DNA of 63,836 nucleotides, counting the filler, from Reticulomyxa filosa (taxonomy: Eukaryota; Protista; Foraminifera): assembly GCA_000512085.1 (NCBI GenBank). It is 16 parts of 16 records of this genome, joined end to end, with 100 filler letters (N's around TTAATTAATTAA, not from the genome) between each part and the next. Parts side by side here need not be neighbours in the genome. Positions count along the whole stretch, not along the records: positions 34,570 to 36,513 come from ASPP01028747.1; positions 36,614 to 37,999 come from ASPP01014130.1; 14 more parts are not named here. One strand, 5' to 3'. Numbering within the stretch: position 1 is the first letter of the stretch; each line of letters opens with the position of its first letter. A model generated the notes under the pieces. That model made no database searches. It saw nothing but the letters and a program-made list of their open reading frames with translations, and had not been told where the DNA came from. Position numbers and translations under genes: made by a program. Positions 34,470 to 37,999 of the stretch are shown here, in pieces.

Positions 34470-36673
34470 NNNNNNNNNNNNNNNNNNNNNNNNNNNNNNN
34501 NNNNNNNNNNNNNTTAATTAATTAANNNNNNNNNNNNNNNNNNNNNNNNNNNNNNNNNNNNNNNNNNNNATTGTGCTCCAATGCTTGCATTCTAAACACA
34601 AATAATTTGAATTTGTTTACAAAAAAAAAAAGACAACAATACTTTGAGCAAGTTTTGCTATTAATCAATTTTGATAGAACAAATCTTTTTAAAAAAGTGT
34701 TCAGATAAATTAGAAATGAAAACAAAACAGTTGTTCAAAGACGCTTAATCAATAAAGCGAATAATAAACAATCCAACCATCTCCTTTCTAATATTGCTCA
34801 AAAAGGATAACCGGTTTATTGTATCCAAAAAACGACTTGACCATGATTTCAATATTTTCGTTACTCTTGGTGTGTGACATCGGAAGTGCATACTACATAA
34901 TTGTAGTACATGTGAAGGAATATCCAACTAACAGGACATTTTCACATAATTAATTTTGGGATTGAAAGTAGTGTTCATTGTCATTTGTGTTTGAGTTCCA
35001 TAACGCATATCGACACCTTCAAGATTTGTTGTGTTGATTCTCTCATCCAAATTGTTTCTGCGTGGACGTGGACACACGCCTTGCTTCTTCTTACGATAGA
35101 CCCACACTTCTTTGTACCGAGACTTTGCCATTTCTTTTCATTCGATCCGTTATCGCTTGCTATATTGTTTGTAATAGTCCATATGCTCTAAATAACCCTT
35201 TCATTCTTCTTTTATTTTCTTCTATCCTTCCCTTCTTAATCTCCAAACCTAATGTAAATCACTTCAAAATGAAAGGGCTTGTTTTTGATGGAGATATATT
35301 ACAATCACTACAAATATGATACAAACAACATACATCAACACCAAACTTCAAAAAGAGCTTATCTTCTTTACTTCTGATTGCCTTCTCTTATTTCTTTTTA
35401 TGTTCTATGCTATCCTCTTCCATTATTCTGAATAACGTATATCCATTCGTTTGAATTTGAATAATGTCAACCCATTGAATATTCATCCACTTGAATATCT
35501 CCATCGTTCTTTGCCATCATTGTCTGAAGGTGCATCCACTACGACAACTCTGGTACAACTGTTTTCTCTTTCATTTCTTTTGATTGTGTGTAATCTTATC
35601 ACAAAAATACACATTTGAAATGTAATTGTGATAAGCATCAAGGGAAGAACCGAGCTGGATAATGACACGTCTGTCGATAGATATGGATTCATGTTGTCTC
35701 CTTCATCACCGATGTGACGGCGATGCAATTTTTAATTGCTCACGAGATACCAATTTGCCAATTTGCTAATATGCTTCAGAAATTGCTGATCCTGATTCCA
35801 ATCCCTCTGTTCGCCGGACGTTGCTGCATGCAATTACATCCAAATAATTGTCCCAGCAGTGCCTTTACCCAATGATAAGCTTATTCGACGATGATGACGT
35901 TGATACATTGAAAAGCCTTATTATAAGAAGTTGGTTGGTCACGTTCGGTGTTTGATTGTTGGTAGCAACACGAATTTGGCGAGCAAGCAATTTGAGTAGC
36001 AATATTGTGGAATATACCCAAGTATCTGCGAACAGCACATATACTACTTGTTGCAGAAGACAAAACGCTCAATGCTTGGACAACAGCCAAGATACGGTCT
36101 GCAATGGAATGTGAAAAGTTGGCCATCAAAGATATTCCACTTGTGAATTCGATGATGATACTACAGTTATACGTGTCATATGCCGACAATGCTTCGGAAG
36201 AATTTTTTTTAAATATCTACATCCTTCACTTCAATCAACGTTTCCATTTGGAAAGGATCTTTTGGATTGCTGTCTTCTCATGTGGCAAGACAGAAAAGTC
36301 AAACAATGACACATCATTTGCTTTTCCGTACATGTCAATAATAACTACGACTGCCTCCATTGCGCCAATAGACAAACTGGTCGATATACGATTTATAAGT
36401 TGTATTATCATATCACATAGTATGTCATTGGCTCGAATGATTGATTGTGCGCGCTGTATGGTATTAAATAAAAAAAAAGTGGAGAATTGACTACAACTGC
36501 TGCTGTTCCGGACNNNNNNNNNNNNNNNNNNNNNNNNNNNNNNNNNNNNNNNNNNNNTTAATTAATTAANNNNNNNNNNNNNNNNNNNNNNNNNNNNNNN
36601 NNNNNNNNNNNNNGCGAGGCGCAAACGCCGTCGTCTCGACCGGAGCGAAGCGCAGTGGAGCAGCCGTGTTTGA

Positions 36674-36679
36674 GGTCAA
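36674..36679 (-). promoter_or_regulatory. -35 box (TTGACC) of the predicted IS110 circle-junction promoter; -10-like CATGTT at 37829-37834
   Basis: Joining the right end to the left end over the CT core gives TTGACC-N17-CATGTT, directed into the bridge RNA. Confidence 0.6.
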
Positions 36680-37623
36680 GCGATTTTTGGATTCCGCCAC
36701 TGGGTTTGATCTCGCAGCATTGCGTTGAGAATGACGACGATCTTGCGCGAGCAAGCGGCGATGATGAGACGCTTGGACTTGCCGTTGGCGGCCAGTCGGC
36801 TGGCGAAGGCGGCGATGGTGGGGTTTCTGCGGATCGCGGCCAAGGCCACCATGTGAAGGATGGGACGCAGGTCGTTGCGTCCTCCGGCAATGGTGGAGCG
36901 TCGTCGGCTTTTGCCGCTTTTCTTGTCTGCAGGCGCGACGCCGCAGAGCAGAGCTGCGGGACGGCGGCCGGTGTGGCCCAGCTCGGGCATGCGAGCCAGC
37001 AGGTTGCCGGTCAGCACCGGCCCAACACCGATCATCGACCGCAGGATCTCGGCCTTGCGCCGCATCTCCTCGTCTTCCTCGATGACCCGGGCGATATCGG
37101 CGTCGATGCTCTTGAGATCGGCCCTGGCACGCTCGAGGGTCTGCTCTACAAGGCAACGCAGAGCCGGTTCGCGCAGATGCTCGAGCCGGTTGCGGGCCTC
37201 GTCGATGGCCTTGCGCAGCATGCCGCGCACGATGAGGAATTCGCCCAGTCTGCTGGCTTTTCCGGAGCGTCGGGTCAGGCCCGCGCCGGGGAAGTGCTGG
37301 CAGTACAGAGCGATCAGTCGGGCGTCGATCGGGTCGGTCTTGGCCAGGATGCCGGCCGCTTCGGCGAAGCGACGCACACGGGCCGGATTGAGCAGGTGGA
37401 CGACCAGGCCGTCCGCCTCCAAGGCTTCGATGACCTCGCGCTCGTAGCCACCGCTGGCTTCGAGAGCGACCTCGCCGATGCCGGCCTGGCGCAGGTGACG
37501 GGCCAGATCGCCCATGCCGCGTTTGTCGCGGCTGACGACAAAGCCAAGCTTGCTCGCCAGGATATGAACGTCGAGCTTGTCCTTGCTGACGTCGATGCCG
37601 GCGACTTGTACACTCTTGTCCAT
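36676..37623 (-). CDS. IS110-family DEDD recombinase/transposase
   Basis: GIDVSKD, LEASGGYE, KTDPIDA (DEDD RuvC-like); IGVGP, GVAP...KSGK (catalytic Ser region), GGR..LR..L.M, A..RK. GGAAGG RBS upstream of ATG 37623. Confidence 0.95.
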   Translation of the reverse strand: MDKSVQVAGIDVSKDKLDVHILASKLGFVVSRDKRGMGDLARHLRQAGIGEVALEASGGYEREVIEALEADGLVVHLLNPARVRRFAEAAGILAKTDPIDARLIALYCQHFPGAGLTRRSGKASRLGEFLIVRGMLRKAIDEARNRLEHLREPALRCLVEQTLERARADLKSIDADIARVIEEDEEMRRKAEILRSMIGVGPVLTGNLLARMPELGHTGRRPAALLCGVAPADKKSGKSRRRSTIAGGRNDLRPILHMVALAAIRRNPTIAAFASRLAANGKSKRLIIAACSRKIVVILNAMLRDQTQWRNPKIA

Positions 37624-37629
37624 CTTTGT

Positions 37630-37822
37630 GATCCCTTCCTTGCATGCGGTTTTCTGGACCGTGCAGCCGTACGGGCTTTGCGAAGAGACGGCGCGGGCAC
37701 CTTGCTCCACTTCGGTGTCCAACGGGGCTTACCTTGAGACCTTACGGGCTCCGCGTCGCCAGCGTGGGAGGGGGTTGCCACCCCCTTCCACGTTCCGCCC
37801 AGTCAGGCGGTTTTCCTTCGGC
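37630..37822 (-). ncRNA. Predicted bridge RNA (5' hairpins, target-binding loop, donor-binding loop); ends approximate
   Basis: Contains in the expected order LTG AAGGTCTC (37736-37743), RTG AGTGGAG (37705-37711), LDG ACGGCTGC (37663-37670) and RDG CATGCAAG (37639-37646), each matching the reconstructed target or donor. Inner stems GGT/ACC and CGGT/ACCG. Confidence 0.85.
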
Positions 37823-37925
37823 CGCGCAAACATGCAAGAGACCTTCTCTCGACGACTTGCCGGCTTTTTGGTGGAGAGAAGGTCTCTCCACTCCGCTTCG
37901 CTCCGGTCGAGACGACGGAGATGTC

Positions 37926-37999
37926 TCAGGAATCCGCCGTGAACCCGATCTTCTTCACGATCGGGCCCCAGCGGTCGTAGCTCGATTTCAACAGCGCGC
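37926..37999 (-). CDS. C-terminal fragment of a probable Bug/TctC tripartite tricarboxylate transporter substrate-binding protein
   Basis: ALLKSSYDRWGPIVKKIGFTADS* resembles Bug-family C-termini. GC-rich bacterial codon usage. Confidence 0.55.

Follow-up and report, generated by a model that had tools for sequence, protein, structure and literature searches.

We characterized a minus-strand locus within a 63,836-nt stretch of DNA from the Reticulomyxa filosa assembly GCA_000512085.1 (the window, to which all positions refer) and conclude, with a probability of about 0.93, that it is an intact insertion sequence of the IS110 group that would move by bridge-RNA-guided recombination, catalysis and mobility being argued by analogy with IS621. 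The anatomy and family membership of the element are those of IS110, and its guides covary with both target and donor. Such a system, consisting of a bridge recombinase and a bridge RNA, has been described for IS621 of E. coli (Durrant et al., 2024, PMC11208160; Hiraizumi et al., 2024, PMC11208158; PDB 8WT6), and the present element is a well-formed, ordinary addition to that mechanism as described in 2024. Its features are collected in Table 1.

Table 1. Features of the IS110-group element and its insertion site, in window coordinates.
Feature	Position	Strand	Description
Insertion sequence	36661..37836	-	1,176 bp, without terminal inverted repeats; core CT on both sides
Left core CT	37838-37837	-	Junction GAGAAGGTCT-CT / TGCATG; element begins at 37836
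Right core CT	36660-36659	-	Junction ACACGGCTG / CT-CCACT; last base of element 36661
Recombinase gene	36676..37623	-	315 aa plus stop, ATG at 37623; RuvC-like DEDD domain and Tnp domain with catalytic-serine motif
Short right end	36661..36679	-	TTGACC (36679-36674) overlapping stop codon; left donor ACACGGCTG (36669-36661)
Non-coding left end, predicted to encode the bridge RNA	37624..37836	-	213 nt; alignment and consensus structure
Two 5′ GC-rich hairpins	37810-37795, 37793-37762	-	Consensus structure
Target-binding loop module	37760-37687	-	Consensus structure
Donor-binding loop module	37686-37623	-	Consensus structure
Left target guide (LTG)	37736..37743	-	AAGGUCUC (DNA AAGGTCTC); 5′ side of target loop; equals left target plus first core base
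Right target guide (RTG)	37705..37711	-	AGUGGAG (DNA AGTGGAG); reverse complement of CT+CCACT
Candidate handshake dinucleotide CA, 3′ of RTG	37704-37703	-	Complementary to left donor positions 6-7 (TG) (match I4); with it the RTG feature spans 37703..37711
Left donor guide (LDG)	37663..37670	-	ACGGCUGC (DNA ACGGCTGC); last 7 nt of element plus first core base
Right donor guide (RDG)	37639..37646	-	CAUGCAAG (DNA CATGCAAG); reverse complement of CT+TGCATG (first 6 nt of element)
Left target (LT)	37839..37845	-	AAGGTCT, then core CT; identical to LTG positions 1-7
Right target (RT)	36654..36658	-	CCACT, preceded by core CT; RTG region complementary to 36651-36662 (match I4)
Right-hand part of interrupted REP-like repeat	36628..36660	.	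CT-CCACTGCGCTTCGCTCCGGTCGAGACGACGG; repeat match I1
Uninterrupted inverted paralogue of REP-like target repeat	37871..37918	.	Complete unoccupied site AAGGTCT-CT-CCACT in the orientation of the interrupted copy

Element Boundaries and Target Repeat

The ends TGCATG...ACACGGCTG are common to 15 relatives with element lengths of 1,168-1,196 bp, and in multi-copy genomes both the ends and the CT core were confirmed independently of the guides. A repeat search found no inverted repeats at the element ends. The non-coding left end measures 213 nt and the right end 15-18 nt beyond the stop codon; the 215 nt given for the region upstream of the recombinase in the preliminary description holds if the core is counted, but not for the left end itself.

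The element interrupts a REP-like palindrome, of which an intact inverted paralogue lies 34 nt away with a single CT at the equivalent place. In the repeat search, the arms of this paralogue matched the two flanks of the element over 33 nt at 97% (match I1) and over 17 nt at 94% (match I2), and the overlap between them is exactly one CT. Since the uninterrupted inverted copy is present, the empty target is more than a reconstruction, and the sequence agrees with both the empty target (left target-CT-CCACT) and the donor junction (left donor-CT-TGCATG) as they had first been read. The same REP-like repeat also flanks three relatives (L105, L081, and L108), and its depth in metagenome contigs is 3-10 times that of the insertion sequence. 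The contigs also contain joints skipping about 1,180-1,220 nt. We rejected these as proof of an empty site, because other letters stood between the two sides or the sides were short, and take them for additional copies of the flank repeat. The target itself forms one of the two arms of a palindromic repeat pair lying downstream of a gene.

The Recombinase

The encoded protein matches Pfam PF01548 (E = 1e-14, residues 8-126) and PF02371 (E = 1.9e-14, residues 191-273), and it scores 174.7 bits against a cut-off of 140 for NCBIfam NF033542, "IS110 family RNA-guided transposase." Among PDB chains, it aligned over nearly its full length with the ISCro4 transposase (E = 1.6e-30) and with IS621 (E = 1.2e-29). 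Without exception, 29 homologues share residues D11, E55, D97, D100, and S236-G237. The motif residues align with GIDVSK, EA., KTDxxDA, and SG of ISCro4, and were mapped by motif to D11, E60, D102, D105, and S241 of IS621 (PMC11208158). A longer reading of the ORF, 348 aa from a TTG start, was rejected because it crosses conserved RNA in which relatives have 1- to 3-nt indels.

Guides and Structure of the Predicted Bridge RNA

Four guide segments had been reported as readable in the left end, and both their words and their positions were confirmed: LTG, RTG, LDG, and RDG follow one another in that order, with both donor guides matching the element ends at 8/8 positions and the target guides matching at 8/8 and 7/7. 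When the left end was shuffled 200,000 times, single guide words arose 426-3,643 times each, and all four jointly in none. The RDG runs into the ribosome-binding region GGAAGGGA (37639-37632). The LTG pairs with the first core base only, an A standing opposite the T at the second. Under the handshake concept, the two bases 3′ of each right guide (RTG or RDG) pair with the non-cognate DNA at its positions 6-7 (PMC11208158); here the candidate donor-loop handshake, GA, would form no more than one G.T wobble with CT at target positions 6-7. Of 48 relatives, 44 have C or T immediately before the core, in keeping with a conserved G.

Because an Rfam scan of both strands at E up to 1 gave no matching family, the RNA was modelled from relatives. 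In the resulting consensus, 95.9% of cells were paired vs. 35-47% with partners slid, compensatory changes were found in four pairs, and the guide words fall on the unpaired sides of two conserved internal loops. The test that had been proposed, a covariance model of homologous left ends, was run (model R1, made from 12 close relatives); in about 70 distant loci with 35-49% protein identity, it recovered the two-loop RNA directly upstream of the ORF for the recombinase. The architecture initially proposed, in which paired guides surround a small hairpin, emerged in the comparative analysis as the two-loop structure, but not in a single-sequence minimum free energy fold, which neither reproduced the two loops nor was unusually stable relative to shuffles (z = -1.0). 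Single-sequence folding was rejected as a test of the RNA for these reasons.

Covariation of Guides with Targets and Donors

Across 48 elements (37 distinct guide sets), the longest guide match to an element's own flank averaged 5.9 on the left and 6.65 on the right, against 3.4 and 3.6 to the flanks of other elements. None of 20,000 permutations reached the observed sum of 465, the maximum being 314, so that homologues do display the guide-target covariation on which the earlier reading had been staked. In nearly all of the 48 relatives, reverse-complementing the RTG yields CT followed by 5 nt of the right flank. Among close relatives there are five target classes with matching guides (AAGGTCTC/AGTGGAG, GGAGTAACT/GCGGAG, TGAGGTC./CAGCGAAG, AAAGGTCC/GAGCGAG, and GAGAGACC/CAGAGAAG), and in sister elements the target-side words change with the insertion site while the element ends stay constant.

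On the donor side, of 62 distant loci with complete ORFs, about 54 repeat the 7-mer of the LDG exactly just past the stop codon, in several variants. In distant loci, a contiguous reverse complement of the RDG was mostly not found upstream of the RNA, as expected from the discontiguous right-donor pairing of many IS110 members (PMC11208160). Distant left ends were consequently taken from multi-copy comparisons and a short end motif, which presupposes [CT]T-TG... at the left boundary; 26 loci were dropped for the motif or for a short left flank. The core CT was present at 48/48 right junctions and 45/48 left junctions of relatives.

What the left end shares with the flanks could also be viewed as DNA-level subterminal repeats bound by the transposase, with the left end merely an mRNA leader. 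The guide words are indeed also DNA repeats of the ends, and the left end continues into the ribosome-binding site and start codon and is thus at least partly a leader. We nevertheless regard this explanation as highly improbable, because the target-side words correspond to host DNA beyond the element ends and vary with the site, which protein-binding repeats cannot explain, and because the words lie on single-stranded loop sides with compensatory changes in the stems. Moreover, the RNA of IS621 is required in vitro (PMC11208160).

Comparison with Known Systems

Like IS621, the element encodes a recombinase with RuvC-like DEDD and Ser Tnp parts (315 aa here vs. 326 aa), has a CT core, a long left end, a short right end, and a REP-type target, and arranges a target-binding loop before a donor-binding loop, with left guides equal to the top strand and right guides complementary. 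A candidate handshake dinucleotide after the RTG and a predicted -35 box in the right end are further likenesses. The original assignment to the IS621 type is accordingly upheld by the domains, the homology to IS621 and ISCro4, the NCBIfam name, the long left and short right ends, the CT core, the two loops, and the covariation. In contrast to these likenesses, the sequence is distant from IS621 (phmmer E = 1e-29; alignable, low identity), the target is AAGGTCT-CT-CCACT rather than ATCAGGC-CT-AC, and the donor ends differ. The RTG has 7 nt (CT plus 5) instead of 4, and the RDG is a contiguous 8 nt, whereas the IS621 pairing is discontiguous, between 9 RNA nt and 7 donor bases. Ahead of the loops stand two 5′ hairpins, the LTG reaches only the first core base, and the 3′ strand of the donor loop overlaps the ribosome-binding site and start codon.

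The best match with a solved structure is the ISCro4 transposase (PDB 9T56; residues 2-304), which shares the motifs GIDVSK, EA(S/T), KTDxxDA, and SG, the comparison being one of proteins only. The recombinase superfamily and RNA-guided logic are also shared with the IS1111 group and seekRNA elements. However, IS1111 members carry their RNA in a long right end and have subterminal inverted repeats of 7-17 bp (PMC11208160), whereas here the left end measures 213 nt, the right end 18 nt past the stop, and subterminal inverted repeats are absent. The long left and short right ends and the lack of such repeats place it in the IS110 group; membership in IS1111 was rejected on these grounds and because the RNA model lies upstream of the ORF. 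According to two reports, ISPpu9 and ISPpu10 of Pseudomonas putida are IS110 elements inserting into repetitive extragenic palindromes or in one conserved intergenic repeat (PMC12288879; bioRxiv 10.64898/2026.03.19.712850); the likeness is drawn from those descriptions, and the host clade and sequences are different.

Catalogues compiled since 2024 list thousands of such orthologues (PMC11208160), and no new question is opened by this one, the mechanism, structures, covariation, and standard annotation name being already established. It is a compact natural bridge recombinase, with a 315-aa protein, an RNA of about 200 nt, and readable contiguous guides (LTG 8, RTG 7, LDG 8, and RDG 8 nt). Its close relatives have a naturally reprogrammed target loop and a constant donor loop, and such sets could help in choosing orthologues for genome engineering and in studying specificity drift alongside host REP families.

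Mobility, Expression, and Proposed Mechanism

The closest relatives are from uncultured Alphaproteobacteria, at 95% identity in metagenome contigs and 69% in a Reyranella MAG. Two 95%-identical elements (L105 and L106) lie at two other copies of the same REP-like repeat, in other samples. Being near-identical copies at other sites of one repeat, they indicate recent transposition of the lineage. A plasmid collection held no close relative (best match 14% coverage, 73% identity), and of the words sampled from this exact sequence, no sequencing run contained above 42%.

The RNA predicted from the left end has two tandem internal loops, each with a left and a right guide. Within the loop that binds the donor, ACGGCUGC and CAUGCAAG would pair with ACACGGCTG-CT-TGCATG, the sequence formed where the ends meet in the excised circle. 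By analogy with IS621, the 315-aa DEDD/Ser recombinase, as a tetramer, would hold both loops and exchange strands at the CT core, and the circle would be inserted into the REP-like palindrome AAGGTCT-CT-CCACT. The circle junction probably creates a promoter, TTGACC-17-CATGTT, driving both RNA and recombinase: this sequence spans the CT, with the -35 part in the right end and the -10 part in the left end, and agrees with 8/12 consensus positions, TTGAC is conserved in 12/12 family members with spacers of 17-18 nt, and junction promoters have been described for the IS110 family (PMC11208160). A sigma-70-like promoter was not found in the integrated copy. RNA libraries yielded one match, a 244-nt contig with a relative's left end and flank (37635-37868), of a kind that cannot prove transcription or RNA ends.

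On this reading, the element would be programmable and active. It might instead be a genuine IS110 member that is dead or domesticated, its guides still readable and its recombinase or RNA no longer made or functional. The lack of a promoter-like site in the integrated form would fit such a copy, as would the imperfect pairing of the LTG and donor-loop handshake with the core region, and with no run above 42% of sampled words, the runs are no gauge of abundance or activity. We consider a dead copy unlikely, given that weak expression of integrated copies is normal for IS621 (PMC13626964), that the ORF is full-length with every motif residue conserved, that all four guides match without error, and that near-identical copies occur in other samples at other sites of the repeat. 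The preliminary description of an intact element with a protein of about 315 aa stands on much the same features: the full-length ORF, the conserved DEDD and Ser motifs, the perfect donor guides, and the 95%-identical copies elsewhere.

Two further ideas concern the loops. With the ribosome-binding site and start codon lying inside the donor loop, the recombinase could repress its own translation by binding its RNA, the weaker possibility of the two. The other, itself doubtful, is that the cleaved core lies at a variable distance from the left-target pairing within this alphaproteobacterial subfamily; if truly so, the RTG rather than the LTG would set the cleavage register, and a one-base bulge on the left side would be tolerated. 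The LTG includes the first core base in this element and in L083, L107, and L001, and stops one base before the core in L084, L085, and L087 and, with an extra T, in L109, the loop geometry being the same. In genomes of the L084/L085/L087 lineage, all uninterrupted copies of the repeat carry the extra base.

Recombinase and Insertion Site

The evidence supports the view that this element is a well-preserved member of the already known and intensively studied IS110 bridge-RNA kind. Recombinase homology, guide logic and covariation among relatives sustain its earlier reading as an IS110 bridge-recombination system, and the components listed in the preliminary description (four guides, a CT core, a left-end RNA region and a recombinase ORF) are all present. 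Judging from homology, the element would be active in recombination and reprogrammable. The 315-aa recombinase contains the Pfam domains DEDD_Tnp_IS110 and Transposase_20, scores above the threshold of the NCBIfam equivalog model 'IS110 family RNA-guided transposase', and matches the ISCro4 and IS621 transposases of solved structure across residues 2-304 (E about 1e-30). When 28 homologues (43-84% identity) were aligned with it, D11, E55, D97, D100 and S236-G237 proved invariant; they fall within the motifs to which IS621 D11, E60, D102, D105 and S241 belong (PMC11208158). A 348-aa ORF with a TTG start was rejected, since it crosses a nucleotide-conserved region with 1- to 3-nt indels among relatives. 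The defining features of the IS110 group in recombinase, element ends, left-end RNA and guide covariation were all found, and membership of the IS1111 group was rejected because the element lacks that group's defining features. Compared with IS621, the element has a 7-nt right target guide (RTG), a contiguous 8-nt right donor guide (RDG), two 5′ hairpins, a left target guide (LTG) pairing with the first core base only, and a donor-loop 3′ strand overlapping the ribosome-binding site and start codon. These differences are matters of degree.

CT is the sole sequence duplicated at the insertion, and the element (1,176 bp) has no terminal inverted repeats. By repeat search, its two joined flanks form an inverted copy of an uninterrupted unit (arms I1 and I2). 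Since the arms overlap within the intact unit by exactly two bases, CT, this paralogue in the same piece supports the empty site AAGGTCT-CT-CCACT, as it had previously been reconstructed. The intact unit holds a perfect unoccupied copy of this 14-nt target, inverted, and a mere 34 nt separate it from the left end of the element. Together the two units form a palindrome with ~45-nt arms that directly follows a gene and is reminiscent of a REP pair or a terminator. The protein encoded by that gene presumably ends like Bug/TctC-type periplasmic binding proteins, a group often met in Alpha- and Betaproteobacteria.

Coordinates of the element, its flanks and its guides
Feature	Position	Strand	Remarks
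Upstream gene, last codons and stop	37926-37999 (stop at 37926)	minus	protein ends ...ALLKSSYDRWGPIVKKIGFTADS, stop
Palindromic repeat unit, uninterrupted	37918-37871		follows upstream gene; then 32-nt spacer and GAGAAGGTCT-CT (minus-strand reading)
Element start, TGCATG	37836	minus	directly after GAGAAGGTCT-CT
LTG, AAGGTCTC	37743-37736	minus	left target + first core base
RTG, AGTGGAG	37711-37705	minus	reverse complement of CT + right target
Left donor guide (LDG), ACGGCTGC	37670-37663	minus	left donor + first core base
RDG, CATGCAAG	37646-37639	minus	reverse complement of CT + right donor
Recombinase ORF	37623 (ATG) to 36679; stop codon 36678-36676	minus	315 aa
Element end, ACACGGCTG	36661	minus	then CT-CCACTGCGCTTCGCTCCGGTCGAGACGACGG
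Arm I2	37837-37853 with 37871-37887	inverted	94%
Arm I1	36628-36660 with 37886-37918	inverted	97%
Direct repeat D2	37658-37682 and 37731-37755		25 nt, 72% identity; 5′ halves of donor and target modules
Inverted match I4	37703-37714		complementary to right junction TG-CT-CCACT

Guides and Their Covariation with Targets

The left end had been described as a non-coding, guide-bearing region of 215 nt; it is such a region, although its size is 213 nt. All four guide words occur in the order and strand relation proposed, and they never appeared jointly when the left end was shuffled 200,000 times. Their strand logic is that defined for IS621 (PMC11208160). The CA after RTG, a candidate target-loop 'handshake guide' as in PMC11208158, is complementary to left donor positions 6-7 (TG), so that match I4 takes in the right junction TG-CT-CCACT. 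The GA after RDG forms one G.T wobble with the target CT and no other pair; among 48 relatives, 44 have C or T immediately before the core, which fits a conserved G there.

A protein search returned about 95 clusters (58-95% identity), nearly all on 1.1-1.7 kb contigs, as expected of a repeated element. The nearest relatives are uncultured. Two metagenome contigs carry elements with 95% protein identity, inserted in other copies of the window's target repeat; identity is 83-84% on other contigs and 69% for a Reyranella MAG, and no cultured genome exceeds 49%. No close relative was found in a plasmid collection. Among 14 complete close relatives, donor ends and donor guides are constant, and target loops sort into five classes, every one fitting its own flanks.

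Target-loop classes among close relatives (L numbers denote their loci)
LTG	RTG	Target	Elements
AAGGTCTC	AGTGGAG	AAGGTCT-CT-CCACT	window, L105, L106
TAGGTCTC (near variant of AAGGTCTC class)	AGTGGAG	AAGGTCC-CT-CCACT	L081, L108
GGAGTAACT	GCGGAG	GGAGTAA-CT-CCGC	L001, L109
TGAGGTC.	CAGCGAAG	TGAGGTC-CT-TCGCTG	L082, L083, L086; L088 (near variant)
AAAGGTCC	GAGCGAG	AAAGGTCC-CT-CGCT	L084, L085, L087
GAGAGACC	CAGAGAAG	GAGGGAC-CT-TCTCT	L107

The guide-target covariation that the preliminary description had put forward as a check was evident in a wider set of 48 elements, among which there are 37 distinct guide sets. The longest exact match of a guide loop with its own flank averaged 5.9 (left) and 6.65 (right), vs. 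3.4 and 3.6 with the flanks of other elements; the own-flank total of 465 was reached by none of 20,000 permutations (maximum 314). In almost all of these elements, CT and the next five bases of the flank recur as their reverse complement in RTG, with 27 different heptamers. In multi-copy genomes (Mesorhizobium sp. AR07, a Rhodospirillales MAG, a Chloroflexota MAG and others), guide-independent boundaries confirmed the CT core and guide matches. R1, a covariance model of the two loop modules built from close relatives, gave matches ending at the recombinase ORF start in >70 of 96 further loci (35-49% protein identity). Of the 62 loci in this distant set that have a complete ORF, about 54 repeat the LDG 7-mer exactly, just 3′ of the stop codon, its variants including ACAGTTG, ACGGTTG, ACAGTCG, ACAGCCG, ATGGTTG and ACAATCG.

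Structure and Possible Expression of the Bridge RNA

Left ends of close relatives share 85% mean column identity, and their consensus fold comprises a pair of 5′ hairpins together with two modules in tandem, alike in build (GCCCGU, 8 nt, short inner hairpin, CCG, 8 nt, (C/G)AAGG). In the written-out structure 95.9% of cells pair, vs. 35-47% with partners slid by 1-3 columns, and four pairs show compensatory changes. The paired guides around inner hairpins, preceded by hairpins, that had been read from the sequence reappear in the comparative fold. A single-sequence fold of the left end neither recovered the two modules nor was unusually stable, so the two-loop architecture stands on comparative evidence. 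Repeat D2 suggests that the two loops arose through duplication of one module. At 37623-37646, the donor-loop 3′ strand (RDG, handshake dinucleotide, GGG, CAAAGA) occupies the ribosome-binding region as well as the first base, A, of the start codon; RNA folding or protein binding there could occlude recombinase translation.

A circle-junction promoter has been described for the IS110 family (PMC11208160). Here, a TTGACC in the right end overlaps the stop codon and in the circle would lie 17 nt from the left-end CATGTT; all 12 family members retain TTGAC and this spacing. A promoter search of the integrated piece found no promoter-like site, and weak bridge-RNA expression has been reported for integrated IS621 (PMC13626964). 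A 244-nt contig from a moss metatranscriptome (RNA-seq) library covers 37635-37868 with 11 differences, comprising the whole left end and 32 nt of flank, with no coding region. This contig stems from a relative; it is suggestive and would be compatible with a separate transcript of the left end of an integrated copy, but contigs cannot prove transcription. Public runs holding words of the element are metagenomes of freshwater, aquatic, sediment, soil and rhizosphere origin, none with >42% of sampled words of its exact sequence.

Possible Cleavage-Register and Core Variants

In L084, L085 and L087 (left junctions near 1286, 781 and 1286), LTG matches eight left-target bases, and the distance from this match to the core is one base greater than for the window element; L109 (junction at 316) shows the same offset, with an extra T. 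The uninterrupted repeat AAGGTCCCTCGCTG in L085 (2031-2044) and L087 (2554-2567) includes the extra base, and repeat copies without the extra C were not found on the L084, L085 and L087 contigs. This arrangement hints that the right guide would set the cleavage register.

In the distant lineage of L005 and L006, the core-binding bases of RDG are CAAA, not CAAG, and one copy, L005, has TT in place of CT at its left junction; this may reflect natural variation of the core or what is left of a heteroduplex. L090 (94-235 plus, 2306-2446 minus) and L059 (1333-1485 plus, 297-449 minus) each contain two opposed bridge-RNA matches within a short locus, indicating two related elements inserted close together, head to head.
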